A stretch of DNA of 64,000 nucleotides from Selaginella moellendorffii (taxonomy: Eukaryota > Plantae > Lycopodiophyta), in assembly GCF_000143415.4 (NCBI RefSeq), contig NW_003314347.1, positions 519,438-583,437 on the forward strand. Reading direction: 5' to 3'. The notes below the pieces were generated by a model. It was not told the DNA's origin, ran no database searches, and worked only from the letters and a program-made list of their open reading frames with translations. This document shows positions 6,292-48,000 of this stretch, piece by piece (the first letter of the stretch is position 1; every line of letters begins with the position of its first letter). The translations under genes and the position numbers were made by a program.

Positions 6292-7352
6292 GTTTAGTGT
6301 TCGAGGAGTTCTGGGCATTTGAGGAGGCAGCTGTTGCGTGGGTCCAGCTAAGACTGGTGACCGTGGTATTGACGACTTCAAAGCCGCTTGAATGTCTTTC
6401 TCATGTTGCTGGCATAAGCAAGTAAGCTAGAGACAAGGAGTGGAATGAGATTTGGGATGAAAAAATATTCATGAGAAAAGAACAAAGCTTGAATTTTTTG
6501 ACCCCTCAACGAAAGGAAGCTAAAGACTCGTATAGGGATCTACAAAACCTGTGCCATGCTTGTCCCGCCATGCAAACATCACTCCCTTTCTTGCTCGTTA
6601 AATCGCGGTAGGATCTCTCAAGAACATGACCACTATACTGTTGATGACTATCGCTACAGTAGGATGGACTTTGTGGTATAGCTTGGGCTGGTGCTCTCCA
6701 CAGAAGCAGCACGAACTACACAGGAGGAAGAAAGAAAAAGTAGAGAAGAAAGCGAAGAAGAATCAATGAAGAAGACGAAGAAAGGAGCTAATTACTGCTG
6801 TCCGTGAAGATGAGTGGAGAGCAACTTCAAAGAGCTAAAACTTTCACACGACAAACGGTCAGACGGGAAACTGGAGCGATCTGGCACTAGTGCTGCGATT
6901 CCAGATCGATCAATGTTGTTTGACAACAATGATCTGACACACACAAGACTGTTTTCTTCGTCGGTAAAGCCCTTTCTACTGTTGCACAACAAACTATCGC
7001 ACAGCCGTGGAAGGGAATAATAGTATATAGAAACCTGTTGTATCTTGTATTGCTCTATAAATTCTCCATAAAGTTAAAAGCTTCTTCTTCCAGGCCTAGA
7101 GAAAAGTCGGCTTCAAACACGCGGCATGGCCATCTTTTAGTGTGTACTGTGCAGAACTCTCCCTTTCAACCAGGTCTTATAGTTTGCCACTTACTTGGGA
7201 AAGAAAAAACTGGATATTTCTTCTCACATAGTGATGTTTCTATTGTATACTTAAGAACCTTGTGTTGGCTCAAGGAGTAGTACTATGAAGTGGTGTAACG
7301 AATGCAAAGCTTGGACAGGGCAGACTGCTACTGAACACTATTGCCACTGCCA

Positions 7353-12362: not shown

Positions 12363-12799
12363 CATTGTCATCCCTAAATGTGATTTGGGTGCCACAGTTC
12401 TAAAGAGACTGCTGCTATCGGAGAGCTTACGGGGATGTTGAGATATTGCTGTAAGTTCCTTCATGCACTTCATAGTGATAGTAAATGCCTTGTGATGGCA
12501 TCTTAAACTCGTACCGTGGCATCTGCATTGCCAGTTCAAAGATTAAATAGCCCACAACCAAGAACAAAGTGAAGAAAATGAGAAAACTCTAAGAATGTTG
12601 CTGTCCCCTTAAGTTTCTCTGGCCATAAATTCGCTGCTACAATAGCTTATATCCTTTCTACGCTTTAAGTTTCAGTGCCCGTAGCGGATAGATGTCGTTT
12701 GGACACTGTTGACCACAATTGACTATCGTTGACCAATGGACCGTTGAATGGTTTGTCTTTGCTGACTATGCTGGATATTGCCAGGGCTAGGGTTCTTCG

Positions 12800-13466
12800 A
12801 TGGGGCTCAAGCTGCGAGCAGTGCCGATCACGGAGGTGAATTTCCGGCCTTTTGGCCAGCTCCTGGGAAAGATCGGCGACGGATGCGAGTATGGATCGGG
12901 AGACGCGCAGCTCAATCTCGCGAATGGGATTCCCAGGTAGTGCAGGCAAAATGTGGCCGAAATTTCCAGCGGCTCAGTAGTGATTGAGTGAGTGATGGTT
13001 CCTTTGCGCAGATTCTACCTCATGGAGCTCAAGAAAACGGGGCTGCGATTCAAAAGGATAACGCATCACGCCAGGGTCACGCAGTGTCTGGGATCAGTGG
13101 GAGCTCATCCTTGGTACATGGCGGTCTCTCTTCCCAGCATTGTGGATCCTTCATCGTAACACGAGGGCGCTGTTCGATCCAACGCTGGTGGCCACTACTA
13201 TTTACCTCCCTCTCATGCAAGCGTCCAGGTTTTCAAGATAGATGGTCCTCGCTTCATCAAGCTAAACGAAGGAACTTGGCACGCTGGTCCTCTCTTCGAT
13301 GATCGAGATTCGATGGTCTTCTACAACTTGGAGCTCAGTGACACCAACGTAAGATCATTTGATCGAGCTTGTAGTTACCATGACTTATGTTTTCTCCTTT
13401 TTCTTGTTGCAGGTTGTGGATCACACTACCCACGTGTTTGAGGACGACGTACTGATCGAAGATTGA
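12800..13466 (+). pseudogene. Ureidoglycolate hydrolase-like copy 2, with a premature stop
   Basis: Exon 1 is in frame. CAA>TAA at 13157-13159 in exon 2. Confidence 0.8.
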
Positions 13467-14432: not shown

Positions 14433-15713
14433 CTACAGCCTATGTAAGTTCAATAGGGCGCTGTTGACGAGCTCCTCGAGGCTTCTGGAATGCTTGGTAA
14501 GTCCCACAAAACCCGAAAACGTTAAGAAGTTTTCTTCGTCTGAGGCAGTCGCTGACATTGCTTCCAGGGACGCCTCCATTTCACCGTCTTCTCTAAAACG
14601 TCGCAAGAACCTGGCGTCCTTTGCCATCAAGCTGTTCAGAAGCTCTACGCTATATCGCCGGATACGATTCAAGCTCCTAGAAGGTGCTGTCTGGGATAGA
14701 AGCTCTGTGATTTTTTCGCAAAGCCGTGATTGTTGCGATAGCACGCCTTGTTCAAAGTTACGTGTGTCGAGCCAGGGGATTATGGCTGCTGCCAAACCGA
14801 TGGCTGCCTGCTGTTCCTTGTCTGTGGATTCCAGCACCATCTGGAGGATGGGAGATATGGCTGCTCCAAGCTCCAACTTTTCTTCGTCGTTAAGCTCACC
14901 GCACAAGCTTCGCAAAATTGTGGCTGCATGGACTCCAATTGGCTTGGTGAGCATGTTGATCAAGCTCTTGAGGGTCTTGCTAACGCCACCTTGGCTGTAG
15001 CTTTTGCGCCTGAGGAGCCTCGAGCAATTGTTGGGACACTGGAGGACGAGCAAAAATATGGCTTCCCCGGCTCTCATGGCGATGCTCAACTGGTGGCTGT
15101 TCGGTGCGGTTTCTCTCGCAAATATGGCCATCAAGCTTTGGATAACTCCTCCAGTTGCACCAATGCAATCTCTAAGCTCGTCCTCGGTTGCTAACAGCTT
15201 GATCACGTCTACTGCCAGGTCCTGTAGCTCCAAATCTTCGAGATTGCATATCCTTTGAAGACTTCTTACTGCTGACACTACCGACACTATCTTCTTTCGC
15301 AGAGACCGTCCAGAATCTCCTCCCGCGCCAGCCAATGTCCTCAAAAGCTCGAGTGATCGACGGAATACTTTTCTCGACGTTCGTACTTCGAGGAAGTTCC
15401 AGTCTTCGTCTTGGATAAACGCAACCAGGATGGAGATAAGTCCGCTGGTGTTACCGATTCGCACGCATGTCCTGTGGTCCACGGCTAGCCTGTTGAGGAT
15501 AGCGAGTCCGTATCTCTGTTCTTCTGGCACTATCTTCTCTCCTGCGGTTAAAAGGGAAATGATGGCTTCCAGGGATCCAGGGATAGCGGAAATCCTGAAG
15601 CAGTTACTCCGGTGACGAAGCAGGTACTTGATTACTATCGTTGCAGCTTTCCTGATTTCGGCCTCACTAAGATCCTTCCAGGTGATCATCTCTAAGAGTC
15701 TCTCCACAACTCC
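14433..15713 (-). pseudogene. TM-ARM copy 2, 5'-truncated (ARM region only)
   Basis: The frame is open from VERLLEM to the stop, but the TM half and start codon are lost. The junction ctctccacaactccacaactacacagg joins it to sequence equivalent to 6714. Confidence 0.8.
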
Positions 15714-23542: not shown

Positions 23543-24662
23543 CTGCATGGCACCACCAACAAGGAAAAAGAAGAACAGAAACTAGAAAATGCCTGTGGAA
23601 GCTTTGGGAAGAACACAGGATGAAGTTCGACTGGGACGAGAAGAATACGGTGGGTGTTATATACGAGATGTTTTGTTTTAAATCAATGTTTTCCGCTCTG
23701 CTGGTCTCTTGAAAATGTTCCTAGCTATGAGATAGATGCTTCAGACACACAAGGGACCAGGACCAAGAAAAAATATTCATGAGAAAAGAACAAAGCTTGA
23801 ATTTTTTGACCCCTCAACGAAAGGAAGCTAAAGACTCGTATAGGAATCTACAAAACCTGTGCCATGCTTGTCCCGCCATGCAAACATCACTCCCTTTCTT
23901 GCTCGTTAAATCGCGGTAGGATCTCTCAAGAACATGACCACTATACTGTTGATGACTATCGCTACAGTAGGATGGACTTTGTGGTATAGCTTGGGCTGGT
24001 GCTCTCCACAGAAGGAGCACGAACTACACAGGAGGAAGAAAGAAAAAGTAGAGAAGAAAGCGAAGAAGAATCAATGAAGAAGACGAAGAAAGGAGCTAAT
24101 TACTGCTGTCTGTGAAGATGAGTGGAGAGAGCAACTTCAAAGAGCTAAAACTTTCACACGACAAACGGTCAGACGAGAAACTGGAGCGATCTGGCACTAG
24201 TGCTACGATTCCAGATCGATCAATGTTGTTTGACAACAATGATCTGACACACACAAGACTGTTTTCTTCGTCGGTAAAGCCCTTTCTACTGTTGCACAAC
24301 AAACTATCGCACAGCCGTGGAAGGGAATAATAGTATATAGAAACCTGTTGTATCTTGTATTGCTCTATAAATTCTCCATAAAGTTAAAAGCTTCTTCTTC
24401 CAGGCCTAGAGAAAAGTCGGCTTCAAACACACGGCATGGCCATCTTTTAGTGTGTACTGTGCAGAACTCTCCCTTTCAACCAGGTCTTATAGTTTGCCAC
24501 TTACTTGGGAAAGAAAAAACTGGATATTTCTTCTCACATAGTGATGTTTCTATTGTATACTTAAGAACCTTGTGTTGGCTCAAGGAGTAGTACTATGAAG
24601 TGGTGTAACGAACGCAAAGCTTGGACAGGGCAGACTGCTACTGAACACTATTGCCACTGCCA

Positions 24663-27600
24663 CAAGCCTCAAATTTGCAGGGCAATTAAGTTTAGCATTT
24701 TGCAGGGATTTTAAATAAATAAGGCTACATATAAAAATATAATATGTACTTCTAATGTTGAAATTGTTTAATTTTCTTATATTAACACTTGATCATGATC
24801 CTACACATTTATAAAACTAAGTCAACCCACATTTGATATACCATCACTTGGTGTTGGGTTTCATATATTATAGTGATATTTAAATATGCCATCTAATATA
24901 TTCTAGTTTAATATTCAAATTTATAAAACAGAATAAGTTTAGGTAAAGTTGATTAATTTATTAGTAAAGCATTAAAAATAAAGCTGTTCACTTAAAAATA
25001 AATATTCACTCAACCTGACGACCAACATGAAACCAGAATTCAAATCTTTGGCAGTTTTGGATGTTGATCTAGTGATGCCACCAAAGATATACATCATTTA
25101 TCATGGGTACAACTTGTCATTGGTTAAATTAGCAAGAACACTATGCATTGCCATCTGGATAATATAAAATCTTTTGATACCACACTTCCTAACAAGAGAT
25201 AGAACCTACTGTCAAAGTTTGGTCAGCACTCAACACCAAATGTCCCAATCTTTGCACCTATGAATTGTAAAGAAAGTAAAAAACTTACCATTTTGGTGGC
25301 CATGTGAATCTGCCACAATGAGAAGAATGTAAGCTGCTTCTCTGATGCCAATGGTTGAGAAACTACATGCCAAGCAATTCTTCAATATGGTGCCCAACAT
25401 AATCCTCCCAATAGAAAGATCACAAAGAATGTCACCATCCAAGCATAAATTTAAGCTAAGGATCAATTGCCACAGCTACTGCTGCAAGCTTGTGGTTTAG
25501 ACATGTTGCTAGAGGCATCAGACCACCATACTGTCGAAGCAACTTTGCCTTGAATCCAAAGAAACAAAACAAAACAAAATAAAAATGAAGAAGAGAGAAA
25601 AAAAGTATCTGCAATCTTAGTGACTCTCCTAAAATCTTTCCATCGCTAGTGACTTGATAAGAAGTTTGAGAAAATGCAATCTCACTATAAGAAAATCAAC
25701 TTACAACAGCAGCTCCAGTGGCATCATAGCTCATCTCAATTCCCAAAATAGGTAGCAAACCAGTAGCTATAGTGAGAAAAAAAGGGTGTCATGTAGGAAT
25801 TTGCACATTTGGGATGAAATTGTGAGGTGCCATTGCCAGGGATTGGCAAGAGCACATGCCAAAGTTCACAAGACCTTAAATTGAGGGAAAGAAATTCACA
25901 TATTAAGCTTGAATCACAACTTAAAGGCACCAATAGTCAGGTTTGCTATCACAGTAAACACTCTCCACTAAACTTTAGAACTTACCTTCTCAATTTCAAA
26001 GGGTCTCCATTACAAAAGGTTGAATGTTAATACCGGTTAACACTTTACATGTGATATGTTGCCTAGCAGATGCTAAGTGAGTATAAAAATCAATAATTTT
26101 ATACTGTTTTTTCCTTCTGATATCTCTATATACACACACAATACTATATAACATAGACCATATATTTAGAATATTAATATATCCCTAAAGTGAGAAAAGA
26201 AAAATTAGTAAGTAAATATTAGTAATAAATATAATATATGCAAAGTACTACTTGGGAATATGAATATATTTAGAATATTAAAATTTTATGAAACTTAATA
26301 CAAGGAAATGACCAACAAAGTTAGCCGCCCTTGCTACTCTGTGAGTCACCCAGCTTACAAAAGTGTAAAAACAAAAATTGTTAAGAATAACTCTTTTATA
26401 GTTATTAGATTATAAATATATTTAGTCAAAAAAATTTAATGAAGAATTACTAAAAAATATTTTTCTTAATTAGATGTTACATGTAAAGTATGTTTTTACT
26501 TGGAGTCAAACAAATTTAGAATCCTGAAATGGTAAAAAACTAATATATTAATACCCAGACTAAAATAAAAGTAAAGAAGAATTACTAAGATTAACTATTA
26601 TTAATTTAGGGAAGCATTATTTAATTATTATGTGCTTACTTGGAATATGAATAAATATATAACTAAAACTTTAAGAACATTAATATATTACTCAGATCCT
26701 ATAGAGGATTGCTCAATTAAAAAAAAACAGCACTATTGAAAAATTAAAGTCTAACCTAGAAATAAAAAATTATATATACCCTTAAACTCAAAAATATTAA
26801 GAACACTAATACTACTATGCAGACCCAAGTAAAATTAAGAAAAGAATTACAAAAAATAAATAATATACATATTAAACACAAACTATAAATTCAAAACCTA
26901 ATAAACTATATTTGTTCTTAGTCAAAAGATTTATAAATGTGTTTAATGGTAACCGTCAACCTCATGTTTGAAATGTAAGTTTCATGCCCATATATAATTG
27001 CTGTAATTGCCCAATCAATATATCATCAATACATGATTACAAAGAAGAAAAATGTATGAGAGGCTAAATGGCATCTTCCAGTTCCTCTCCAGTGCTCACC
27101 TCTGTCGTCACTAGTGGAGGCGCTGGGGGCTCGCATCCTATGGTGGATCTAGAGCCCGCAGCTCCAGATCTGCTGCTGGCGCCTGTTCTTGCGGGGATTG
27201 GGAGCCTCAGCTTCATTGGCCATTTACTCGCTCTCCTTTAGGGCTATGCCCTTTCCCTAAAGCAGCAGTAGAGATCTTCCATGCCAGGAGCAACAGTGGC
27301 GAGATTGTAGAAAGGCATCCCATTAAGCTCCGGATCTACTGCTGGCACTTGTTCCCATGGAGATTGCTGTGGCGATTGACGGAGATCTTTGGGTGGGAGA
27401 TCTCTACTTGGGAGATCTGGGAGCTGCAGCTTCACTAACCATTTACTTGAGCGCATTGCTCTCTAATTTCAGGAAAGACACAATCTAGTCAACACTTTGC
27501 ATGTGCCACATGTCACAATGCTTTCTTCTCTTGCCCCACACAGCTTGGCCGCCTCCCATTGGCCAAGAGCAAACATCAGCACGATTATTCGCTAAGACAT

Positions 27601-29675
27601 GGTTAAAGAAATAACCCCTTTACAGTTACCCCCCATCGGACGGCTGCAATTGGCTGAATCCGGCGGCCCAGAAAGTTTGGCACTCCCACTTTATTATGAT
27701 AGATTCTTTGGGCTGAACAATTTTGTAGCATTGAACATGCCTATATCCTTTTTCATTTATGCCAGCATATCAATGTATAGTTTCTAAACACACTCTTTGT
27801 TTAAATCTAAGCAAGAGCTCATGTTCCCATCTCTTTTGCTCTCTGGAATAGGAGTATAATCTAAGGAATGCTTATGTTATTCCCCTTTAGTATCTATAAA
27901 CTTGATAAATTCATCTTTAGTAGCCTCCACAAAATTAAGTGTTTCCCACCAAAAGTCTCTTTTAGAAATTTTCTTCTGATACTTTTCAAAGTACCATTTA
28001 AATACCTAGCAATGCTAGCAATATCCACAATTTCAGCTTTGAAAGATTTTGTTCAGACTATTCAATTTTAGAAGTATATCAGATAGCATATGAATAGCAA
28101 ATTGCATTGTGTAATTTGTCAAAAATTGATATATCTTCATAGAAGAGAATTAAAATTCTATAAGAAGACTTGGTATTATGATGTTGATTCTCTTTAAGAC
28201 TTCCTCATGAGATAACTAATGTACACCGTGAATTTGAAGCATACCAAATGCAAATATATTCATAGCATCTTCTAGAGGCTTAAAAGCTATAACTCTTTTT
28301 CTAGAAGTATGCAACTATTTATAAATTTGATTGCACAACTTTTGAACAACCACAAACTTAAGAAATGTATGCACAATTTCAATAGCCACTAAACTTTATC
28401 TATGCGCTAAGTAATGCACTCTAAGCAAGTGTGGAATGTTATATTTCAATCTTGTCACTAGGCTAAATTGTTCTCTAACTATAATAAAAGCTCAATCAGT
28501 TCCAATAGAAACACATTTTCCCTTTTTAAGGTTCATTTCTTCCAAAACCTTTTGATGGCCTCATATTTACTTACAGCCTTTAGTTACCATCAATTTCAAA
28601 AAACAAGTTTTATTCAGACTTTTTTCTTCTTCTTGCATATGGAAAGAGATGTATATGATAAGATGAGCTTTCAAACTTCTATCAATATTGTTATCCACTA
28701 TAATAGAAAATTAAGGACTAGCTTGAATATCTTGGCAAACATCTTTCCATCACATATCTTTTATGCATTTTAAAAACTTTTTCTCACTCATAGCATTTAC
28801 ACAAGTCCTATACTCTATGGTGATTAGCATATAGGGCATTCCCATAAACCTGCTAAATTCACACAAAGATTTATAACTTTGTAAAGGTAATCCCTTATTC
28901 ACAATGAAGTACATATGTTGCATTAAGGAAATCAATTTGTTCTTGTATTGATTTTCTTGAGCAGTAACATATTTAGGGATAGATAACCCTTTCTTTTTCT
29001 TTGTTTCCCAAATAACCATAACTAGTTAATGTTGTTTAGAATTGTTATGCTCTTTTAAAATTGGTTTTTGAAGAGTCAAAGAACCATCTGTACTAAAAGG
29101 ATTATCTTTTTAGCATATACATATGCCGTACATTTTATTCTTTGCTTGCCTTCAACATCCACTATAAAATACACCCAAGGAAAATTGAATTTCCACTCAA
29201 TTTTGAATGTTCTATTCTTTTTCCTTTTTTGATTAGTTGAAGTATTAGTTTTTTCTTTTGTTGTTGAAAGATCTTCATCCTCTAATCTAATTTTAAGTCT
29301 TTTACCAAAAAGGGAATCATGAAGCTCTTGCCTTGCAATATTTTGCTGATTTATCTTTCTTTTCTCCCTCCCATACACAATAGCAAAGAATGCTTCAATC
29401 CCATGTTATTGCTGTCAACTTCATTGAATTCAGGTGGTTAGACACCAGGATATTCTTACAATATTCTAATAATATTCAATAGAATATTATCTGTACTGCA
29501 ATGTGTGAATTTTCTTTGCCCTGCAAGCAGCAACACTAAAATATTTCTATACTTCATTAGTGCAAAGTGAAAATTGAACAATTCTTTCAAGTAGTAAGGC
29601 AAATTAGAAATTAGTCTTCAAATGCAAGGTAAACATGCCTTTGCAAGGCTTTGCAAGGTGCAAATTTGAGACCTG
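24663..29675 (-). mobile_element. hAT transposon relic, long type (second copy)
   Basis: Same TIRs and flanks as 7353-12362. N-terminal TTF-zinc-finger-like RTFKIEWKFNFPWVYF...IKC at 29076-29378. Confidence 0.8.
24686..27703 (-). mobile_element. Putative Helitron-like nested insert (second copy)
   Basis: Near-identical to 7376-10390. Confidence 0.4.
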
Positions 29676-30112
29676 CATTGTCATCCCTAAATGTGATTTG
29701 GGTGCCACAGTTCTAAAGAGACTGCTGCTATCGGAGAGCTTACAGGGATGTTGAGATATTGCTGTAAGTTCCTTCATGCACTTCATAGTGATAGTAAATG
29801 CCTTGTGATGGCATCTTAAACTCGTACCGTGGCATCTGCATTGCCAGTTCAAAGATTAAATAGCCCACAACCAAGAACAAAGTGAAGAAAATGAGAAAAC
29901 TCTAAGAATGTTGCTGTCCCCTTAAGTTTCTCTGGCCATAAATTCGCTGCTACAATAGCTTATATCCTTTCTACGCTTTAAGTTTCAGTGCCCGTAGCGG
30001 ATAGATGTCGTTTGGACACTGTTGACCACAATTGACTATCGTTGACCAATGGACCGTTGAATGGTTTGTCTTTGCTGACTATGCTGGATATTGCCAGGGC
30101 TAGGGTTCTTCG

Positions 30113-30739
30113 ATGGGGCTCAAGCTGCGAGCAGTGCCGATCACGGAGGATAATTTCCGGCCTTTTGGCCAGCTCCTGGGAAAGATCGGCGACGGATGCG
30201 AGTATGGATCGGGAGACGCGCAGCTCAATCTCGCGAATGGGATTCCCAGGTAGTGCAGGCAAAATGTGGCCGAAATTTCCAGTGCCTGGATAGTGATTGA
30301 GTGAGTGATGGTTCCTTTGCGCAGATTCTATCTCATGGAGCTCAGGAAAACGGGGCTGCGATTCAAAAGGATAACGCATCACGCCAGGGTCACGCAGTGT
30401 CTGGGATCAGTGGGAGCTCATCCTTGGTACATGGCGGTCTCTCTTCCCAGCATTGTGGATCCTTCATCGCAACACGAGGGCGCTGTTCGATCCAACGCTG
30501 GTGGCCACTCCTATTTACCTCCCTCTCATGCAAGCTAAACGAAGGAACTTGGCACGCTGGTCCTCTCTTTGGCGATCGAGATTCGATGGTCTTCTACAAC
30601 TTGGAGCTCAGTGACACCAACGTAAGATCATTCGATCGAGCTTGTAGTTACCATGACTTATGTTTTCTCCTTTTTCTTGTTGCAGGTTGTGGATCACACT
30701 ACCCACGTGTTTGAGGACGACGTACTGATCGAAGATTGA
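30113..30739 (+). pseudogene. Ureidoglycolate hydrolase-like copy 4, with a 40-bp frameshifting deletion
   Basis: Exon 1 is intact. 40 bp is lost between two CAAGC pentamers at ~30531, giving an immediate stop. Confidence 0.8.
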
Positions 30740-31699: not shown

Positions 31700-34165
31700 C
31701 TACAGCCTATGTAAGTTCAATAGGGCGCTGTTGACGAGCTCCTCGAGGCTTCTGGAATGCTTGGTAAGTCCCACAAAACCCGAAAACGTTAAGAAGTTTT
31801 CTTCGTCTGAGGCAGTCGCTGACATTGCTTCCAGGGACGCCTCCACTTCACCGTCTTCTCTAAAACGTCGCAAGAACCTGGCGTCCTTTGCCATCAAGCT
31901 GTTCAGAAGCTCTACGCTATATCGCCGGATACGATTCAAGCTCCTAGAAGGTGCTGTCTGGGATAGAAGCTCTGTGATTTTTTCGCAAAGCCGTGATTGT
32001 TGCGATAGCACGCCTTGTTCAAAGTTACGTGTGTCGAGCCAGGGGATTATGGCTGCTGCCAAACCGATGGCTGCCTGCTGTTCCTTGTCCGTGGATTCCA
32101 GCACCATCTGGATGATGGGAGATATGGCTGCTCCAAGCTCCAACTTTTCTTCGTCGTTAAGGTCACCGCACAAGCTTCGCAATATTGTGGCTGCATGGAC
32201 TCCAATTGGCTTGGTGAGCATGTTGATCAAGCTCTTGAGGGTCTTGCTAAGGCCACCTTGTCCGTAGCTTTTGCGCCTGAGGAGCCTCGAGCAATTGCTG
32301 GGACACTGGAGGACGAGCAAAAATATGGCTTCCCCGGCTCTCATGGAGATGCTCAACTCGTGGCTGTTCGGTGCGGTTTCTCTCCCAAATATGGCCATCA
32401 AGCTTTGGATAACTCCTCCAGTCGCACCAATGCAATCTCTAAGCTCGTCCTCGGTTGCTAGCAGCTTGATCACGTCCACTGCCAGGTCTTGTAGCGCCAA
32501 ATCTTCGAGACTGCATATCCTTTGAAGACTTCTTACTGCTGACACTACCGACACTATCTTCTTTCGCAGAGACCGTCCAGAATCTCCTCCCGCGCCAGCC
32601 AATGTCCTCAAAAGCTCGAGTGATCGACGGAATACTTTTCTCGACGTTCGTACTTCGAGGAAGTTCCAGTCTTCGTCTTGGATAAACTCAACCAGGATGG
32701 AGATAAGTCCGCTGGTGTTACCGATTCGCACGCATGTCCTGTGGTCCACGGCTAGCCTGTTGAGGATAGCGAGTCCGTACCTCTGTTCTTCTAGCACTAT
32801 CTTCTCTCCTGCGGTTAAAAGAGAAATGATGGCTTCCAGGGATCCAGGGATAGCGGAAATCCTGAAGCAGTTACTCCGGTGACGAAGCAGGTACTTGATT
32901 ACTATCGTTGCAGCTTTCCTGATTTCGGCCTCACTAAGATCCTTCCAGGTGATCATCTCTAAGAGTCTCTCCACAACTCCGGGTGTGGTACCAATCCTCC
33001 GTCGCGTTTCTTCCCTTGAAACTCCTTTTGAGACGAGAGCTGACAGTATGTTGACGCTTCCGAGCTGCTCTTCCCTTATGCTTGACTGCAGCTTCTCGAC
33101 GGTGAAATCGATAAGGTCCATTCCCAGGCCATCAAACACGCTTCCGTTCAGCGATCGTGAGTACAATGTGTACCAGTACTGCTTCATGGTTTCAATGTCG
33201 TCTTGATCAAGCTCACACTTTCGAGTGACTACTTCCAGCAACCTCTGGTAACGAAGCTTGAATTCCCAATATGCCCTCTCCAGGAGGAATAGCGACGCTT
33301 CTGCCAGCATCATCGCGTAAAACACCGTAAGTGCTTGCTCAGTGTTTTGTCCTTGGGCATTGAAGCCGTGCTCGGCAAGTCGATATACTGAGAAACATAC
33401 GGTGACTGTTGCAGAAGCAAGCTGGAGGAAGTACATAAAAAGGCTGATGATCCTGGTGGGGAGGAACTTTACATACGGCAGGAGCGGGACGCTTCCCACG
33501 GACCAAGTTCTTCGGGCACCGAATCCCTGGTATAAATCGTTCTTTACTGGTTTTTTGGAAAGTCGATCTCTGCTAACGTTTTGTTCAGGGTGGTTATGGT
33601 CGAAGGCTGCAGAGAACGTCTGCCTTAATCTGGCGCTCTTGTCGAACACGAACGAGCTGAAGCCGAGAATTCCCAAGCTGTAATTTGCCTGCTGCCATTC
33701 CAACTCGCTACTTCGACTGAAAACCCGCGTTCCTTCAGTCAGCAGCAAGGCCGATATCGTCCAAAAGTCTTTGGCCTGAATGTTGCTCACGAATCCACCG
33801 AGGAGAACAACAGTTGCCCAGACGAAGGCCAGTTTCCCGAGGCCAGTGGCGAACTTTTCAAGAACTGCGAGCCTGAAAGCTATCAGAGTGAGACGCTGCT
33901 CTGGTGATCGGGAATTATTCCTTTTCACTGGAGCTGAAGGCTCGGGAGTGGAAGGCTGCTGCTCGACTTCCGGATGCGGAGAAAAAACCGACCACAACTC
34001 ACTGGTATTGGGGGTTCTAGTGCTTGCAGGTGGAGAAGTTGGAGAAGCGAGAGCAGAGCCGGAAGAAGGAACTTGAATGCTTACCTCGTCCGCAAAGTGA
34101 ACAGTACTCTTGGGTGCACCGGCAGACTGTACCCTTTGAAGCTTTCTGCTGTTCCTCGAATCCAT
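31700..34165 (-). CDS. Transmembrane + ARM-repeat protein, copy 4, intact, 821 aa
   Basis: Uninterrupted ATG-to-stop ORF and paralog of 3799-6291, with clustered substitutions in the central ARM region. Confidence 0.9.
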   Translation of the reverse strand: MDSRNSRKLQRVQSAGAPKSTVHFADEVSIQVPSSGSALASPTSPPASTRTPNTSELWSVFSPHPEVEQQPSTPEPSAPVKRNNSRSPEQRLTLIAFRLAVLEKFATGLGKLAFVWATVVLLGGFVSNIQAKDFWTISALLLTEGTRVFSRSSELEWQQANYSLGILGFSSFVFDKSARLRQTFSAAFDHNHPEQNVSRDRLSKKPVKNDLYQGFGARRTWSVGSVPLLPYVKFLPTRIISLFMYFLQLASATVTVCFSVYRLAEHGFNAQGQNTEQALTVFYAMMLAEASLFLLERAYWEFKLRYQRLLEVVTRKCELDQDDIETMKQYWYTLYSRSLNGSVFDGLGMDLIDFTVEKLQSSIREEQLGSVNILSALVSKGVSREETRRRIGTTPGVVERLLEMITWKDLSEAEIRKAATIVIKYLLRHRSNCFRISAIPGSLEAIISLLTAGEKIVLEEQRYGLAILNRLAVDHRTCVRIGNTSGLISILVEFIQDEDWNFLEVRTSRKVFRRSLELLRTLAGAGGDSGRSLRKKIVSVVSAVRSLQRICSLEDLALQDLAVDVIKLLATEDELRDCIGATGGVIQSLMAIFGRETAPNSHELSISMRAGEAIFLLVLQCPSNCSRLLRRKSYGQGGLSKTLKSLINMLTKPIGVHAATILRSLCGDLNDEEKLELGAAISPIIQMVLESTDKEQQAAIGLAAAIIPWLDTRNFEQGVLSQQSRLCEKITELLSQTAPSRSLNRIRRYSVELLNSLMAKDARFLRRFREDGEVEASLEAMSATASDEENFLTFSGFVGLTKHSRSLEELVNSALLNLHRL

Positions 34166-36194: not shown

Positions 36195-36900
36195 TGATGC
36201 CTTCCTCCTCACGAGAAAACCTCACAGCTCGTTGTAATCTTTGTTGCTGCGACGTTCTTTTGCCCCAGTGTTGCTTGGAATTTGCTGCTGCCGAATTCGT
36301 ATTCATCCCCTCATGGCTACTCCTGTGATAACTTTTAGTTCTTCTTGTTCGTGTTCGCTGTTTTCTTACTTGCCAGAAAGTGCGTGAGGCTAAACTTCTG
36401 TCACTGGCTGCTGATCACGGTCCTCCAACCGAAAATGTCCAGTAGTGAGCAAAACAACACAATCTGCTTCAAAGTTGCTGAAAATTGCTGGAAATGATGA
36501 GAGCCAAGCTTCAACTCAGCATGGAACTGATGGTCTAAGTGTACAGGGACCTTACATCTTTCCATCGTTGTTCCATTTAGTTAGGATGAGGAATAGCAAC
36601 ACATATTCTCCTGTGTTTGAAAACAATGTAGCACAGCAATTACAAGGTAGTTTACTTGCATACTTACTGGCTATGGATAAGCATGAAGAGCTTATGCTGT
36701 ATTGACTCCAAAACCAAGGGCATGAGAGCTCCAATTCCTGATAAAAGAAAGGAAAATCTTAAGAAAGCCCGAGAAGAGAAAGGCCCGAGAAGAAGAGAGA
36801 AAGAAAATGTGTAGAGCTGACCATGGGTAGCAATCAACGACGGCTTTTGCCCAATCGTCTGGTTTGCTCACGCCATGTATGGAAGGATCCATGAAATTGA
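36195..36900 (-). pseudogene. Collapsed relic of a second four-domain channel paralog, head-to-head with the intact gene
   Basis: Minus-strand 36737-36668 matches channel exon 37609-37676 including the ..agcca|gtaag donor. The next exon reads EYVLLFLIL..EQRWKDVR versus EYFILFLIW..SERWTDIR. 36250-36198 reads AATKI..GFLVRRKA versus AATRI..RGFLVRRRA. Confidence 0.7.
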
Positions 36901-36999: not shown

Positions 37000-37101
37000 A
37001 AACCCTAGGATGTGATAAACCCTAAATTTCAATAACGGTTACGCGCCATTTGTAACTGCTGTTTGAAAATCAGGGTTTTTGTTGGACAAAATGCTAGGGT
37101 T
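37000..37101. promoter_or_regulatory. Telo-box-like motifs in the short divergent promoter region
   Basis: AAACCCTA at 37000 and 37017, and TAGGGTT near 37095, upstream of the ATG at 37143. Motif match only. Confidence 0.4.
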
Positions 37102-37142
37102 ATGAGCTAGCATTTTAGGGCATCGCGTGACTCGACGACACT

Positions 37143-40100
37143 ATGGAGGGGGGTGGAATAAGGCGCAGGAGTTCCAGGCTCTCGGGGATGTTCGATGCCG
37201 CCTCCAAAGCTGTGGCTCAGCTGATTCAACGGTAAGCTACCATCCCCTTGACGTGAAAAATGCATGATTCATCCAAGTTTCTCTCTATAGCGACAATGAT
37301 CCCGAGGAGGATCCAGATTTCATAGCTAGAAACCCTCGCTGGGAAGATCGTTTGCCTCCTATTGGAGGAGCGCTCAAGCCAGAGGAAGAGAAGACTGCTG
37401 CCTTGTTAGCTGCATTGGGAGATCTTCCTCGTGCCACTGACTCCTTGCCCAGGAAGAACTGGAAAAAAGCTTACAAAGCAGTCAAGCGAATGCTGGTACT
37501 TCAAACTTTCTCTCAGTTTTTTTTTCACCTTTTTCTAGCTTTATTTTCTAGGTGGTAAGAAGAAAGGCAAGACGCAGTGCTATAGGGACTGGAGCTCGAC
37601 TAGATGGTCATGCTCTTGGGTTTTGGAGTCCCTACAGTACTACTCGGCTGAGGCTCTTCATGTTTCTCTATAGCCAGTAAGCCTCTCATTAGCTTTTTCA
37701 TTTCTTATCCTTGCATTGTCTTGCAGGAAAGTAGAGTATTTTATTCTGTTTCTCATCTGGGCTCACCTCATAGTGTTCATTTTCCAAGTAAAAATTGGCA
37801 ACAGATCAGAACGCTGGACTGATATAAGGAATTTCAAGCTTGACTTTTTGGACGGTTTAATCACAGCACTAAGCACGTATGTTTTTCCGTAATTGATAAG
37901 TTTCGGCTTGAAAGATCTCTTTGGATGCAGGCTGGAAGTGATTCTAAAGGTTTTTGTCCTAGGCCTCTACAAGAAACGTCATTGCTACCTTCGCAACCCA
38001 TACAACCGGCTCGATTTTGCTATGGTCATTGATTCCTGGTACGATGCAACATGTTACTTGTTTCATGTGCATGTATGATGCTGTATGAGCTACAGGATAC
38101 ATATTATTGTTAGAGGCATAACTGGAAGTGATTTTTTTGCACGGTTGGCAGTCTTGCGTGCCTTTCGCGGCCTGCTCGCTTTGAAGCACATCACCTTTTT
38201 TGCCGATGTCATTGTATGCTGTCCCTCTGCTTTCATTTCCTCATTGATAACGTTTCATCCTTGGCAGGCTATCATGGCGGCGGTGAAACGAAGCGTTCGT
38301 CCGCTTGAAAATGTCATCCTGCTTACTTTTTTCTGGCTGGTTTTCTATGCGCTTCTTGGGACGCAATTCTTGCAAAAGACAATGTTAAACCGGTACTTGA
38401 TTGGTTACAGTAACTCTTATTGAATTCCGATATGCGCAGGTGTTTGCGGAAAACGGACAAGAAAGAAGCCTACCCAGAACGTTTCTGTGACAAGAAGGTT
38501 CTCGATGCGTACATATGCCCTTCCAATCAGAAGTGTACGGTGAGGCATTCCACCTTTAGAGTGTTTGGGTGTTCGTGACGTTACGTTTGCAGTTGCATGG
38601 AAATCCGAACTATGGACAAACAAGCTTCGACTATCTCTGGTATTCCCTGATCAGTATGTTTCAGGTATGAGCTCTGCTATGGCATATCTTTGTTTTGATG
38701 CACCTTCGGACCGTTTAGATTGTGTCGCTGGAAGGATGGGCACTTATAATGTATCATGTAAAGGATTCTCAGGGGGAACGAGCAAGTAGGTCTTTATAAA
38801 TTCTACTTGTGCTAAAGCTCGCCCGTGCAGATTCCTACTTCATGAGCTTGGTGGTAATCGGTGCATATTTTCTTGTCAATGTGTTCATAGCTGGAATAAG
38901 TGGAGTATTTCTCCGTGTTCGAGCAGAACACCAGGCATGAAGTCTTCTTTTTTTCACTTTTGAAGATCAAAAGGTGGTTCATTTCTTTGCAGGCGTTGCT
39001 AAAAAAAAGCCGTCAAGCCCAGACTTCCTTTTACAATGCAACAATAATGGCCAACATCCTGAGGGACGACATCATACGTGACGATGCCAGTATGAGATGG
39101 CATATGCGGCTGTGGAACAAATCAAAGAAAGTGCAACGGAATGTTGTTCGGGCATTTAGTCGCACGCAGTCGTCTATGAGAGACGCGTTCCGGTCTAGCT
39201 CATTGAGGCTAAGCAGGGCTGGCTCGATGACTTACAACCGCTCATTGAGTCGAAGTATGTCCATGGGAGCCAGAGCAGCTTTATCACTATCCGATCAGTG
39301 CCGCGCGATTGCGGAACGTCCTAGTTTCGACTGGGGCGTGCTATTGGCCGTGACTGTCAACGCTATCGTCCTGTGTTTATACAAGTACGGCATGTCCAAG
39401 GAACTATTGTACACGCTCTGTATCCACACTATTCGTTTTTCTTTTTCATCATCGTTTGCTTGACTTAACTCCAGCGCAGATGGTATTCAAGCTGTTCTCC
39501 TCGTGGTTTTCTCAGGAGAGCTTTTACTGAGGTTTCTTGCTTACGGTCCAGGCTCGTTCATATCCGACAGTAAGCAATTTTTGCTCCTTTCTAAGCTTTA
39601 TCTTCGCATTGCTTGTAGGGATGAACCTACTAGATTTCTTTGTTGTTGTGGTCTCTGCTGGAGCTTTGGTCTCGCGCAAGTATCCAAACATCTCTGCTGT
39701 TCGAGTTTTGCGATGGTTCTACTTGTCAAAAAAACACGTCGACAGGAACCCCTCTGTTGTGGTAAGTCTTTGTGTTTCATTGAAAGGAATGTGGACGGTA
39801 GTTATGTTTGCAGGCTACCTGTATGAAAAGTGTTGGCTCGCTTGTCAGTGTGTTCTTCTTTTATATGCTCGTTATTGTGGTATTTTCCATATTAAGCATG
39901 GAGCTCTACAGTGGCCAGTATTACAAGTTTTCGGACGGGTATCCTCGTGGAAACCACGATAATATGCTTCAAACTATGCTTCTCTGGTTCTCGGTAACTA
40001 CTGCCGAGTCCTGGCCAAATCAACTGTGGAATTCGATGAGACCGGGAGTAGAGTACAAGTAAGCTCTTCTTTGTTATCAACAAAGAGGTTGACCCATGGT

Positions 40101-43100
40101 TTTGCAGCGGAGTGGCTCCTTTCCTGTATATATTCTATTTTGTTTTGACAGCTTTTATCATTATGAACCTTATTATCGCTGTTTTACTAGAGCGGAACGA
40201 GCTTACTGACAACGAGAAAAAGCAGATTCAACGGGTACTACTTAAGCTTGAGTCGCTGACAGATAATTCATTTCTCTTTCCCACAGACGGACCACATACG
40301 ACTGCTCAAGCGCATGCAAAGCAGAGCGTACGTAAGAAGCGGAAGCTGGATGGTTGGCGCTGTCGAGGGAATGAAGTCAAGCTTTGGAAGTTTTGCGCAC
40401 CGTGTCCTCGGCATGAACGTCAGGCCAGTGAAAACTCACAAGGAATCTCAACAGGACAAACGCCGGGACCGCGACGCGGACCACGACCGAGACCGGGACC
40501 GCGATGATCGCGCTCGAGACAGAGGCTACGACCTCCCTGGAACAGTTTCTGGGGAAACAGAAGGGGGCGGACAAACCTTAGAGGCCGTGTCGACTACAGG
40601 TGCAGAGGAAAGCACCTCCACCTCAACGACAGGAGGAGAAAGAAGAGGCAGTAGGAACTCTCAGATATTACAGGCTACCGGATTTCCACCAGACATTGGG
40701 GAAAAGCGAGGCTCAAGGACTGCACTGGAAGATGCTGTTCTCACGCTCGCGGACATTACGAAGCCTCCTTCGTTTAAGTCTACCAGCATGCTCATGAGAA
40801 GTCTGAGCAGAAGCAGTAGCAAGAGGGAGTCATTTCAGCTGTCCGACTACGAACTACTTGAGAAGGATTTTACCAGAATTGAAAGGCCATGGTACCTGCA
40901 TGAAGGTTCGCTTTTGATTTTTGGAGAGAACAGCAGCCTCAGAAAACTTTCGAGAAAAATAGTCGAGCATAAGTGGTGGCGCTGGTTTTCTCTTGGCTGG
41001 GTTGCCTTGAGTACCTGGATTGTTATTGAGATGCGATCGACTGGAGAGCCAGTCTTTGCCGACCTTGCCATGAAGATTCTTCACAAGCTCGTGTTCGCGG
41101 TCGGTAAAGCCTTCGTTTCTCCTGTCCATGGTTTAACATTCTGAGTTTTACAGTTTTTTATGGTGGAGTTTCTGCTGAAAGTAATCTCTTATGGTTTAAT
41201 GTTTTCGCCTGACGCGGTGCTCAACGATCCTTACAATATCTTGGATATCTTTCTACTTATCATCGACGGACTTAATCTATCGAGCTGGAGTGGGAGTGAG
41301 AGGTCTAGACGAGCAATACATGCTTTAACTGCACTCCGACCATTTCGGTTTATCTCTCGGGCTGCAAAGCTGAGGACCCTGTTGACGAACCTCATCAAAA
41401 CCATTCCGGCTATAGTTGCTGTTCTGCTATTCACCTTCCTCATCTTCGTGATTTTTGGATCCATAGGAATACAGTTGTTTCGAGGCCTTCTCTATTCGTG
41501 CAACGATTCCAGTATAACTCATCGAGCCTATTGCACTGGTCACTATTACAACAACGTTGGCCTCTACTCTCCACGGGCGTGGAGAAATCCCACGTTCCAC
41601 TTTGACGACATTGGCAACGCTTTCCTCTCGTTATTCGTTTGCTCCACTTTCGACAACTGGGTGACGAACTGGCTGTACCCCGTAATGGATATTGTTGGTC
41701 AGGACAAGCAGCCGCAACGGGATAGCAGTCCGGCTCATGCCCTTTTCTTTGTGGCCTTTTGCATATGTGGGGGATTTTTCATAGTCCGGGTGTTTATCGG
41801 AGTATTCATCAACGAGTTTGGCAAGAACTCCGGGGCCTTGCTTCTGACCGAGAGGCAGAAGCTGTGGCGGGACATGAATCGAATTATCCAGAAGACGAAG
41901 CCAGCAGCATTGCCGCGACCTCCAAAGAATTTCATCAGGAAGTTCTGTTTCTATGCCATCCGAAATCGTACGTACCAGAAGATCATGATCATTTGCCTCC
42001 TGGGATACTCTGGACTTTTGGCCACGAACTATGCTGGCCAGCCGCCATATGTTTCCACACGCCGCCAGAAAGCTCACGTCGCTCTTACGACATATTTCTT
42101 GTTGGAGGCTCTGACGAAGTTTTTAGGCGACGAGGTATGTGTGGGAGCGTTTCCCCTGAATTCTAACTCCTTTTCTTTTCTTTTTTGTGCAGTTTAGAGT
42201 TTACAAAAAAGAGTATTCAAGGCACATCGAGGCACTGATATCTATTATAGCGGCGTCGGGCTTGATGGGAGTAAAGGGAACACCGAGGGGTTATCTTGGT
42301 CGCTTTGGCTACATAACTCGGGTCTTTTGCATCATTCCTCACGTACCGAGAGCGCGGGTGATTATCAGAACCATATTCATATGTTTGCCAACAATGGGAG
42401 AGATCATGGCTCTTCTCGCTATTTTCCTGTTTGCGTTTGCGGGTGTTGGCTTCCAGATGTTTAGTCACGTCAAGGACGGGAACTGCATTGGCCCCGTGCT
42501 CAACTTTCGGACATTCGTCAATTCTTTCATTACCGTCTTTCAGGTAAGTTTCTTGCTTTCTGGCTCTTCCATCCCTCACTTCTCCGTTTTCTTCGTTTTT
42601 TTTTTTCCCACAGGTTTCAACACTGGACAACTGGTCTTGCATTATGGGTGACGTGATGGTCGGCTCACCCCTATGTTCCAAGAGTAGCCATTTGACGGCG
42701 AACGACTGTGGCTTCCCCTTTGCTGGGGTGATATACTTCGTGCTGTTGGTCCTGGTCGCAAGCTTTATCTTCATGAACTTGTTTGTAGCTGTTATTCTCG
42801 ACGCCATCACGTTTGGATTGGTGAACGAGAATTCGATGGTCACGCCTACACACCTTCTCGGCTTCAAAGCTCTATGGGCTCACTATGATCCCCAGTAAGC
42901 AAAGCTCTTTCATAGTTTTAGGCTCGAACCATTTCTCTGGTTGGCAGTGCTACGGGATACATTGGAATGCACAAGCTACGGAGATTTGTGGATGCGCTGG
43001 GTATCCCCTTGGGACGTCGGCATAATGCCACTGTGGAATGGTATGAAGCTTGTTTTGGTGGGTTTGCTCGATGATAACCTTTTTGTTGTCCAGGATTATG

Positions 43101-43494
43101 AGGATCGAGTTCGAGGTCCTGAGCTTTCGAGTCCCAAACAAAGGCATTCCTTTCAAGCAGCTGCTCGAAACTCTGACGCTCTACAAGATTGGACCCACAG
43201 TTAAGCAGCTCACGAGCGTTCTTTTTTGTTTCTTGAGAAGAGTTTCTCTTTCTATGCGCACAGGGTCTGCCGCTAACTCTTCGGATCGAACGAGAGAAAC
43301 GGATTCACGACATTTACCTGCGGGGAGCGGCCACAAGGATTGAAGCTCTAGTGCGGGGATTTCTAGTGAGGAGAAGAGCCGCGCGAGCGAGAGGAGAGGA
43401 GATTGGAGCGAAGCCCAGGAGCGATGAAACCAAGAAACCAGACGAAGGCGGCGGCGTCAGGAGCGGCCCAATGCTTGTAGAGGGTCTCGAGTAG
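37143..43494 (+). CDS. Four-domain (4x6TM) voltage-gated-type Ca2+/cation channel alpha subunit, multi-exon
   Basis: Four S1-S6 repeats. Pore loops SLEGW (E at 38731), TAESW (40006), TFDNW (41652) and TLDNW (42626). S6 segments FLVNVFIAGI, IIMNLIIAVL, FIVRVFIGVF and IFMNLFVAVI. EF-hand-like FKALWAHYDP..TGYI, IQ-like AATRIEALVRGFLVRRR, and TAG at 43492. The GT-AG junctions I checked keep the frame. Confidence 0.9.
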
Positions 43495-45099: not shown

Positions 45100-48000
45100 C
45101 TAATAATATTGCTTCTCCTCGCAATGCAACAGTGCCAAAACTGCGCTTACCACATGTTTCCCTTCTCTATGTATATCAAATCTTGGATCCTTGATTTTTC
45201 TCGTGAGCAAGTCATCTAGCTGCGACCGCAATGCCTGGACACGCAAAAGCTGTTAAAAAGAAGCTCTTACAAGGATAGCAACTTACATTTACAAGCTCCA
45301 TGGTCTTGGCAGACGCTGTGAATTGTAGATAGCCATCGAGCATCTCCACACCTTTGCCGTTTGAGACGAGCGGCCCTCCAAACATGAGAAGAGCATAGTC
45401 GGAAATGTTGGTGGTGTCCCGAAGGTAGATCCCGGTTGTCTTCACCTTCTCGCTGTAGACGAGCCATGGCTGTGCAAACTGGCCGACTCGACTGTTGACA
45501 GAGGCCGGATGAGGCTCGACTTTGCCATCGTCCTTTGTGAAAAACGCTGTTCGCCTTCCCCTTGCTTTGCATTGCACGACGTTTGGGTATAAACCAGCGC
45601 ACAAAACCGCACGAACCATTTCCAGATCGTCACTGTGCTTGTTGTAAGCCTGGACGAGAAAAGCATCGTAAGTTGGAGACAGACATTGCAAAGTAATCTC
45701 TACCGCATAGTTTGCTGAGTTTGACGAGTTATCGACGAAGCCAATCTTAGAAAGATGGTCGTAAAACTGTTCTCTCGCACCGTCCATCCATTGTAGAGTC
45801 TGTGCAGATAAAAAATTCTCCCAGCAATAATTGCGTTCGCGTCCATGTCGCTTGGCAACTATATAACCTTCATATGCCCTCATTAGAGCTAAGTGGTCAC
45901 TGCTTATCAAAATCATAAAAAGAACCCCATGAAAATCAAGGCTTGACTGAATAGAAAAGTACCTTCTCGCGTTTCCTGCGAGCCTTCGTTTCGCTTCATC
46001 AGCAGCATCTCTCTTATCGATCGGAATAACAAAAGGATCCCGGTGAGCCAAGGCTGCCGCAATCGTTAGCGCTGGATCTAGACACTGAAATATGGCTCCC
46101 ATCAGCAGCATTTTGCCAACCTTTGGATCTAGCGGCAATGTCGCAAGGTGTCGACCTGCAACCAGAGTTAGCTCATATATCTTAGAGACCACGGCTTGAA
46201 TCGTACCAAGAGACGTCAGCTCCTCACGATCGTCCAAGGCACCGATCGTCTTTAAAGACTCAATAGCATTATCCACAGCACGGAGCTCTGGAGGCTCCAG
46301 AGCTTTAGATAAGAACTTCGCTATACTTCCGACCTGTAGGCTCTTTATCTGCAGACAAAGAGATTCCAGGGGTGTTCGCAGGATTTCTGGAAGTTGATAC
46401 TGTGCCATAGCATCGTACATCAGCTTCGGGTAGAGATGAAAACAAATTCCAGGTTGCACCCTTCCGGCTCGTCCTCTTCTCTGGCAAATAAAAGCAAGAA
46501 AATGTGCTAGAAATCCTTCAGCTAAGAACCAAGGACGTAAATTCAGACCTGATGAGCAGCAGCCCTGGATATCCAGGATGGAAGAAGGCACGCCAGCTTG
46601 TTAAGAGCATCATAGCTAGTTTCCTTAGCTTTCCCACAGTCGATAACATACACAACGTCATCAATAGTTATGCTAGTTTCTGCAATATTCGTCGCTAAGA
46701 CAATTTTTCTGCATTGAAAGCAGAAAGTTAGAAATCAAACGATCGGCCGGAAGCATTACCTTACACCAGGTGGAGGGCGCTGAAATATTTGCCTTTGATT
46801 AATTGTAGGCATGGATCCATGCAGAGGAAGCAGCAGTTCATTTCTTACGGATGGATTGAGTTTCAGCTTGTCCAAAAGCTTGGAAATGTCATCCCAACCT
46901 GTTAAGAATACCAGAATAGCACCATCGTTCTTCTCTTCGCAAATGTGTTGAATTGCTGCCTCCACCTTCACAATCGGATTTAAGAAATTTCAAGGGAAAG
47001 AATACTGGAAAATCCATACCAGGTCAAGGTCTATGATTTCTGGATTCCAGCACTCCAAATACTTCCTTGTTGACTTGGAAAATTGCTTGTATGTATCTTG
47101 GATGGCCACTTCCTGTCGATACAGTTGAGAAAATTCAGTCGGGGCAATAAGTTGGAGTACCTCAAAAAGTTCAGTCAGAGAATCCTTTTGTTTCTCAATT
47201 CGTCTTCCTCCAGAAAACCGAGAACTTGCTTGGTTATTTTGTGATTGGAATCCAGTACTTTCCACAACATCTTCCAGGAAAAATTCTCGAACGGGAAAGG
47301 TAAAACCCTGGCAATTCGAACACGTTTAGCTACACACGCAGGAAAAAGAAAGTGCTAACCGGAATGTGCAGCTTCGGTGCATTGCCAAAATATTTGGAGA
47401 ACATATCGGCATTGATAGTTGCGCTCATGAGAATGAGACGTAGCTTAGGCCTCTTCGGTAGAAGGTCTCGTAGAACAACCAGCAGGAAGTCTTCGTTCAT
47501 TCCACGCTCGTGTATTTCATCGACTATCACATGACTGACGCCCTCTAGCAGCGGATCTTGAACCTGCAAAACAGTTTGTAAGAATCGCTAAAGCGTAATC
47601 ATGGAATACAGTATACCAGACGTCTCAAAAGCACACCAGTCGTGCAAAAGAGTAGCCTCGTCTCTTGCGAACGCCTGGCCTCCAGTCGGATTTGATAGCC
47701 AACACTTTCACCAAGCTCGTCTCCCCGTTCATCAGCAACGCGAGTAGCAACTGATATAGCGGAAATTCTTCGAGGTTGTGTACAAATTATGTCACAAGCC
47801 GCGCCTCGTCCTGCATTTATCTCTTCTTCGAGAATAAACTGTGGCAACTGCGTGGTTTTCCCGCATCCTGTTTCTCCGGAGACTACTAGCACCTTTCCGC
47901 AAAGAGTTTCACTCCATCCTTCCTTGCATCATAAATATTAAAATTTACCTGATTTTGAGAAACCGCTTGCAGGACCTCATCTTTCATTTTAAAAGCAGGA

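Follow-up and report, generated by a model that had tools for sequence, protein, structure and literature searches.

Gene structure, transcripts and alleles

The window analysed here is a stretch of 64,000 nucleotides of the lycophyte Selaginella moellendorffii (contig NW_003314347.1, positions 519,438 to 583,437), and its plus strand encodes, between positions 37143 and 43494 of the window, a channel protein with four homologous repeats of six transmembrane segments (S1 to S6). The gene has 23 exons, which form a spliced open reading frame (ORF) of 5151 nucleotides coding for 1716 amino acids, with no internal stop. We consider, with a probability of about 0.7, that S. moellendorffii has five genes for a four-domain pore subunit of the Cav/Nav superfamily, of which this is one, and that it belongs to a land-plant subfamily inherited vertically in the green lineage and not derived from Cav3, the T-type calcium channels of animals.

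The gene model combines a spliced protein-to-genome alignment for the 5' exons with the RefSeq protein XP_024517728.1 (P0174), mapped at 100% identity, for the 3' exons. Three guide proteins (P0002 and P0170 of S. moellendorffii and P0172 of Diphasiastrum) yielded identical 5' exons from the ATG at 37143, which has an in-frame stop four codons upstream, and a fourth guide (P0171), which is devoid of the N-terminal region, matched from exon 4 on and left the exon boundaries unchanged. All on the plus strand, the exons are located at 37143-37231, 37291-37495, 37552-37676, 37727-37876, 37931-38038 and 38096-38213 (exons 1-6), 38268-38392, 38440-38539, 38593-38664, 38719-38785, 38831-38934 and 38993-39419 (exons 7-12), 39480-39569, 39619-39761, 39814-40058, 40108-40234, 40287-41099 and 41154-42134 (exons 13-18), and 42193-42543, 42614-42894, 42948-43040, 43094-43199 and 43264-43494 (exons 19-23), the last one closing with the stop codon (43492-43494). 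An earlier, sequence-only reading had placed an intact-looking four-domain channel at 37143-43494; these coordinates proved to be the exact ATG and stop of the spliced ORF, which is intact on both haplotypes. No tandem copy of the channel was found elsewhere in the window. A collapsed channel paralogue considered at 36195-36900 has no support at protein level, as a tblastn search of the window with the full model (E<=10) gave no match there on either strand.

Most of the 22 introns, which are 45 to 70 nucleotides long, are transcribed and correctly spliced. The transcript evidence consists of Logan contigs (not raw reads) from four RNA-like runs of three studies over 37100-43099; the RNA-like status of a run is a guess made by the tool, and the spliced contigs show that RNA is present. 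Exact contig joints were found at 15 introns (1-4, 7, 10-13 and 15-20) and overhangs fit introns 14 and 21, which brings the introns supported by RNA-like contigs to 17 of 22. These include intron 11 (38935-38992), which lies between the final repeat I exon and the one with the RefSeq start codon and is the only intron with GC-AG borders, the other 21 being of the GT-AG type. A contig of run X1 skips 58 nucleotides at this intron, with a 5-nucleotide ambiguity of placement that permits GC..AG.

The locus is already represented in RefSeq by XP_024517728.1, a protein of 1277 amino acids named "voltage-dependent T-type calcium channel subunit alpha-1H", which maps to 12 exons (39047-43491) and starts within the linker between repeats I and II, at Met440 (39047-39049), and is therefore without repeat I. 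The gene lies on an 830-kb scaffold, and a second scaffold (GL377585.1) carries an allele that is 97-99% identical, has the same neighbours and shows the same intact 23-exon ORF. In RefSeq this other-haplotype allele is XP_024533751.1, which starts at Met268, the first methionine of exon 7, and its first channel exons were called as a separate gene of 142 amino acids (L004 2866-3399). The names given in the family include T-type, L-type and sodium channel types 1, 3 and 9, often differing between alleles of one locus; they are automatic best-hit labels. The original JGI models of this locus and of a paralogous one were fragments of 196 and 204 amino acids (EFJ10835.1 and EFJ10760.1) and, because such early models had only about 200 amino acids, earlier surveys probably missed the Selaginella channels.

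Five loci of this channel, each on both haplotypes, are present in S. moellendorffii, the paralogues being XP_024517810, XP_024521493, XP_024544215 and XP_024536113/XP_024524545. The closest paralogous locus, XP_024517810, shares the 23-exon structure, including an exon 6 of 118 nucleotides. Purifying selection acts on every part of the gene, repeat I included: the ratio of non-synonymous to synonymous substitution rates (dN/dS) is 0.157 between haplotypes and 0.124 against XP_024517810, and ranges from 0.05 to 0.33 across all regions of the gene. Within repeat I, the comparison with this paralogue gives 0.14 for S1-S3, 0.11 for exon 6 (11 synonymous and 5 non-synonymous differences) and 0.07 for S5-S6. 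Decay of repeat I is unlikely, because the ORF of the second haplotype is intact and dN/dS is low in the repeat I regions.

Repeats, selectivity filter and phylogenetic position

Four homologous Ion_trans repeats of six transmembrane segments in a single polypeptide make the protein a member of the superfamily that comprises Cav, Nav, NALCN and Cch1. Pfam Ion_trans matches were obtained for several exons of the gene, and the domain was matched three times in P0174 against four in the full-length paralogues; residues 175-429, in repeat I, match repeat III of the same protein (E=1e-11), and the hydropathy profile is consistent with a layout of four times S1 to S6. Repeat I, delimited by homology with repeat I of paralogues and with repeat III of the protein itself, covers residues 141-425 (37728-39004), and is followed by repeat II (residues 531-760; 39320-40219), repeat III (residues 990-1265; 40959-41840) and repeat IV (residues 1305-1545; 41958-42808).

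The P-loop signature, T or S, any residue, the filter residue, any residue and W, is present in all four repeats: (i) SLEGW in repeat I (E369, the motif starting at residue 367; 38725-38739), (ii) TAESW in repeat II (E706, from residue 704; 40000-40014), (iii) TFDNW in repeat III (D1203, from residue 1201; 41646-41660) and (iv) TLDNW in repeat IV (D1485, from residue 1483; 42620-42634). The selectivity filter therefore reads EEDD, in register with the T-x-[E/D]-x-W columns of an alignment of 153 sequences and again in one of 45 sequences. The pore residues E, E, D, D that the sequence-only reading had reported for a land plant thus hold when aligned with 150 other four-domain channels. The same filter occurs in the aligned homologues of liverworts and lycophytes, with near-identical motifs in all full-length proteins of Selaginella, Diphasiastrum and Marchantia. 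By analogy with Cav3, this ring of four acidic residues would form a Ca2+-permeable, probably Ca2+-selective pore.

The linker between repeats III and IV is short and carries a conserved motif, GALLLTERQKLWRDMNRIIQK (41832-41894; in short ...LLTERQKLWRDMNRIIQ...), whose core (LLTERQKL, RD, NR, IQ) is invariant in the aligned land-plant homologues. It aligns with the inactivation-gate region of Nav channels (MFM/IFM-TEEQKKYY; MFM-TEDQKKYY in arthropod Nav), and its invariant hydrophobic LL-TERQK may, as in Nav, serve for inactivation as a particle that closes the pore. The C-terminus had been described as bearing EF-hand-like and IQ-like elements, and both do lie at positions equivalent to those of Cav1, each falling somewhat short of a canonical domain. 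Indeed, the EF-hand-like region (residues 1561-1598, across intron 20; 42854-43020) aligns with the EF-hand region of Cav1 and scores just below the cutoff of Pfam GPHH (24.9 against 26.8 bits), and the IQ-like motif AATRIEALVRGFLVRRR (43327-43389) has I-E instead of I-Q and no Pfam IQ match in the window protein, whereas the paralogue P0002 passes Pfam IQ. These two elements suggest a feedback by calmodulin or Ca2+. In the paralogue XP_024517810 (GL377652.1, 1866 amino acids), the last exon (7987-8787) prolongs the C-terminus by a segment not present in the window gene, in which further IQ-like repeats occur (ATKMQALARGF, ATKIQAVARGF, ARKIQVATRR and ATKIQRAARF).

A phmmer search with the repeat III exon against 1.84 billion representative proteins returned proteins of S. 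moellendorffii, Ginkgo and Marchantia as best matches. Among solved structures, 57 PDB sequences were matched at E<1e-10, with sequence similarities of 7.5e-95 (322 bits) for Cav1.2 (8eoi), 1.8e-90 (307 bits) for Cav3.2 (9ayg), 6.5e-78 (266 bits) for Nav1.7 and 7.6e-54 (184-186 bits) for NALCN. Trees were built with FastTree (153 sequences) and with IQ-TREE (LG+F+G4, 1000 ultrafast bootstraps, 45 sequences, 1203 columns) from MAFFT alignments (FFT-NS-2/FFT-NS-i), with Cch1 as outgroup and NALCN in neither tree. All land-plant proteins group together in a clade supported at 100%, the branching order of which follows plant phylogeny. Its sister group (100%), in the FastTree topology as well, consists of intron-less metagenomic genes with the filter EEDE, which encode proteins of about 1600-1730 amino acids with the III-IV linker LLTE[KR]QK as in plants and lie on gene-dense eukaryotic metagenome contigs. 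This sister clade is probably green-algal; on one of its contigs a neighbouring gene resembles ABCI19/20 of plants and green algae, which is a lead only. The sole named chlorophyte protein in the tree (Tetradesmus, filter SEND) is placed elsewhere. A protein of the streptophyte alga Mesostigma viride (Mv15459, P0248, 3088 amino acids), which has a DDTT filter and, in S4 of all four repeats, a full charge ladder with R at every third position, groups with oomycete and euglenid channels outside the land-plant clade.

Cav3 proteins (fish, bee and nematode) form a separate clade, also with 100% support and far from the plants, and both trees refute the orthology with Cav3 that the EEDD filter and the RefSeq name suggest. 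The equation of EEDD with the T-type ring made in the sequence-only reading is thus right as to the residues, since Cav3 does carry EEDD (P0042), and does not extend to kinship: because the Cav3 and plant clades are separate, the filter is shared with T-type channels but not by orthology.

Possible function and alternative explanations

Against the reading of the locus as a working channel gene, possibly with a part in sperm, stand observations on its occurrence and transcription, on its voltage sensors and on exon 6, which are weighed here together with the explanations that they favour. Plant homologues were found in Marchantia polymorpha (Mp2g23520, apparently single-copy), Riccia fluitans (R1flu_010761), S. 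moellendorffii, Diphasiastrum complanatum (O6H91_02G023500 and O6H91_14G042100), Ceratopteris richardii (KP509_11G019800) and Ginkgo biloba (Gb_09885, a model of 737 amino acids with TFDNW and LLTERQK). The Ceratopteris protein (P0246) has an EDDD filter, with TTDSW in repeat II and TFDNV for TFDNW in repeat III; its model is without S4 of repeat IV and may be mis-annotated. All these lineages have flagellated sperm, and no conifer or angiosperm protein was found in the homologue searches, which were mostly both word-based and length-limited, so that absence is suggestive only. Retention in a lineage with flagellated sperm, as put forward in the sequence-only reading, agrees with this pattern in that homologues occur only there; it is not matched by mosses and hornworts, for which the same searches of limited sensitivity gave no homologue. 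Because both of these groups have such sperm, flagellated sperm do not in general need the channel, as far as these searches go. From the phyletic pattern, a role in flagellated male gametes is conceivable, at somewhat less than even odds.

Sequence of the repeat III exon occurs in about 18 RNA-like runs of 8 studies, which does not suggest strict sperm specificity. It would fit a functional Ca2+-permeable channel with a general or vegetative task in the Ca2+ or electrical signalling of non-seed plants, which would coincide with flagellated sperm only through a loss in the ancestry of seed plants. The retention of five Selaginella loci and the lack of moss and hornwort matches point the same way. 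Such a role is nevertheless doubtful in our estimate: the typical repeat III filter and linker are found in the homologue of Ginkgo, whose sperm are flagellated although it is a seed plant, and the searches gave no conifer or angiosperm protein; furthermore, transcript depth is low, and strobili may have been part of whole-shoot samples.

The voltage sensors have fewer charges than those of Cav or Nav. In-register S4 charges number two to four in each of the four repeats, namely R2, R3 and K5 in repeat I, R1, R2 and K4 in repeat II (R3 being Y in all land plants), K1, R4, R5 and R6 in repeat III (with H/T at R2/R3), and only R1 and R3 in repeat IV, where the inner charges have given way to a proline-rich segment. 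This reduced pattern is common to the full-length land-plant members aligned. With every repeat thus short of S4 charges, voltage gating is uncertain, and the channel may be weakly voltage-sensitive or insensitive. The surrounding scaffold is largely kept, with F-x-x-E-x-x-x-K/R in S2 of repeats II-IV and N-x-x-D in S3 of repeats I-III; in the window protein the charge-transfer aromatic in S2 of repeat I is S. With the S2/S3 scaffold kept in most repeats and two to four S4 charges in each, the channel would probably be voltage-modulated, less steeply than an animal Cav. The loss of charges and of the repeat I aromatic would also be expected of a channel like NALCN or Cch1, in which real voltage gating has been lost and which acts as a leak or as a regulated entry for Ca2+ or cations. 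We regard this as unlikely, since the similarity to NALCN (184-186 bits) is well below that to Cav (307-322 bits), the tree places the plant proteins with Cav/Nav-type channels and apart from the Cch1 outgroup, the filter is EEDD and not EEKE or NEEE, and the S2 signature persists in repeats II-IV.

Exon 6 (118 nucleotides; 38096-38213) codes for S4 of repeat I (residues 228-267) and is skipped in the sole contig that reaches it. This contig (of run X11) joins the end of exon 5 (38038) straight to the start of exon 7 (38268), 13 of the 14 overhang letters matching, plus a shared G. Since the exon is 118 nucleotides long, skipping it shifts the frame and leads to a stop after 6 codons. None of the four runs covers exon 6 (zero depth in the bin 38100-38299), its index words occur in none of about 20 RNA-like runs (a weak search, with 8 words), and no full-length four-domain mRNA from the locus occurs among the transcript contigs of the four runs. 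Furthermore, the RefSeq models of both alleles begin after S4 of repeat I (Met440 and Met268). Exon 6 is skipped in at least some transcripts, which gives an unproductive or N-terminally truncated message. Were such skipping the rule, the full-length channel would not be made at the window locus: the transcripts would be targets of nonsense-mediated decay, or would yield a truncated protein from Met268 or Met440 without voltage sensor I, and this might mark the onset of decay of a single copy among five redundant paralogues. The X11 junction, the uncovered exon, the index words and the RefSeq starts all speak for this explanation, which we hold to be improbable all the same, as the direct evidence consists of one low-depth contig and an eight-word search, exons 1-6 are intact on both haplotypes, and dN/dS is low in exon 6 (0.11) and in S1-S3 of repeat I (0.14). 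In addition, RefSeq gives two paralogous loci isoforms that begin with the methionine homologous to Met268, just past exon 6, and such short isoforms occur beside full-length ones in paralogues, so that skipping looks like a shared isoform. Indeed, since the RefSeq starts of both the allele and the paralogues fit it, skipping of the repeat I S4 exon seems recurrent in the gene family.

The sequence-only reading had named frameshifts in complementary DNA (cDNA) as evidence against an intact channel gene. One RNA contig does contain a frameshift, through the skipping of exon 6; purifying selection on this exon, however, makes an isoform the likelier explanation of the skip than decay, and it may act as a control at the level of splicing. 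Taking this further, the land-plant EEDD channels could provide the Ca2+ entry that steers spermatozoid flagella or chemotaxis, with exon 6 as a conserved splicing switch: included in the male germ line and skipped elsewhere, where the resulting frameshift would keep the channel off in vegetative cells; we consider this combined proposal speculative and unlikely as a whole. Lastly, contaminant or horizontally acquired DNA, to which the animal-like look of some automatic names ('sodium channel type 9', for instance) might point, deserves almost no credence in view of the 22 introns of 45-70 nucleotides, the 830-kb scaffold, the 97-99% identical allele with the same neighbours, the presence of the gene in both RNA and DNA runs of the species and a gene tree that follows plant phylogeny.

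As regards the rest of the window, the downstream neighbour of the channel gene encodes a DEAH-box RNA helicase with HA2 and OB_NTP_bind domains (45212-46591, minus strand), which follows the other-haplotype allele too. The region 1-34200 is made up of large, near-identical direct repeats in pieces of 2.3-6.8 kb with 94-99% identity (e.g. 6459-13222 = 23767-30535), separated by AT-rich spacers. These repeats carry minus-strand ORFs of 860 (3799-6381), 821 (31700-34165) and 424 amino acids (14433-15707) with weak similarity to ARM repeats (PF25598), and the region gives the impression that a single gene was recently amplified, in tandem or segmentally.

Significance and comparison with known channels

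Reviews of the evolution of ion channels and Ca2+ signalling state that all land plants lost channels of the Cav/Nav type with four times six transmembrane segments, and use this loss to explain the absence of fast Na+/Ca2+ excitability in plants (PMC4202318, PMC5824947, PMC6259924, PMC6509283). Four-domain channels were, however, not lost at the origin of land plants, since a subfamily maintained by selection persists in liverworts, lycophytes, a fern and Ginkgo. The Ca2+ channels of plant sperm chemotaxis are described as an open question (PMC5406480). A review of sperm signalling mentions that four-domain channels are absent in Arabidopsis, calls for wider plant sampling and gives the plant sperm Ca2+ channel as unknown. 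The present genes supply candidates for this question, of which Marchantia Mp2g23520 is amenable to knock-out. No report on these plant channel genes was found in the open-access literature; subscription journals lay outside this scope and an earlier mention is possible. As to the novelty that the sequence-only reading had wished to see checked, the open-access reviews deny the channel type to land plants, but the proteins already stand in RefSeq under automatic names. New for the locus are the truncation of its RefSeq protein, the phylogenetically unjustified T-type label and the absence of the repeat I S4 exon from the sole transcript piece extending to it.

Compared with animal Cav3, the protein is likewise one polypeptide of four times six transmembrane segments with an EEDD filter, at about 25% identity, the Cav3 filters reading TLEGW/TQEDW/SKDGW/TGDNW (P0042, fish Cav3.2, and P0089). 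It differs from Cav3 in having fewer S4 charges, an EF-hand-like and IQ-like C-terminus of the Cav1/Nav type, and a short, Nav-like III-IV linker with LL-TERQK, a region in which Cav3 does not align. With Cav1 and Cav2 it shares the post-S6 EF-hand-like element and IQ-type motif at equivalent positions, Cav1.2 being the best structure match, whereas the plant filter is EEDD and not EEEE and the clade is separate. The four-domain architecture and the reduced S4 charge are common to NALCN and Cch1; however, the similarity is far weaker, and Cch1 has the filter NEEE and falls in another clade, NALCN having been compared by similarity only.

The land-plant homologues form one clade with the window protein (100%), and every homologue covering the III-IV linker has its motif; the window locus differs from them by its lack of a full-length RefSeq model, by the I-E form of its IQ motif and by the S in place of the S2 aromatic of repeat I. 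Finally, CAV2 of Chlamydomonas is a four-domain flagellar Ca2+ channel of the green lineage that has been tied to waveform control (PMC11621555, PMC12447923), and, likened by this published description and not by sequence, it is the functional model for a possible role of the land-plant channels in sperm.

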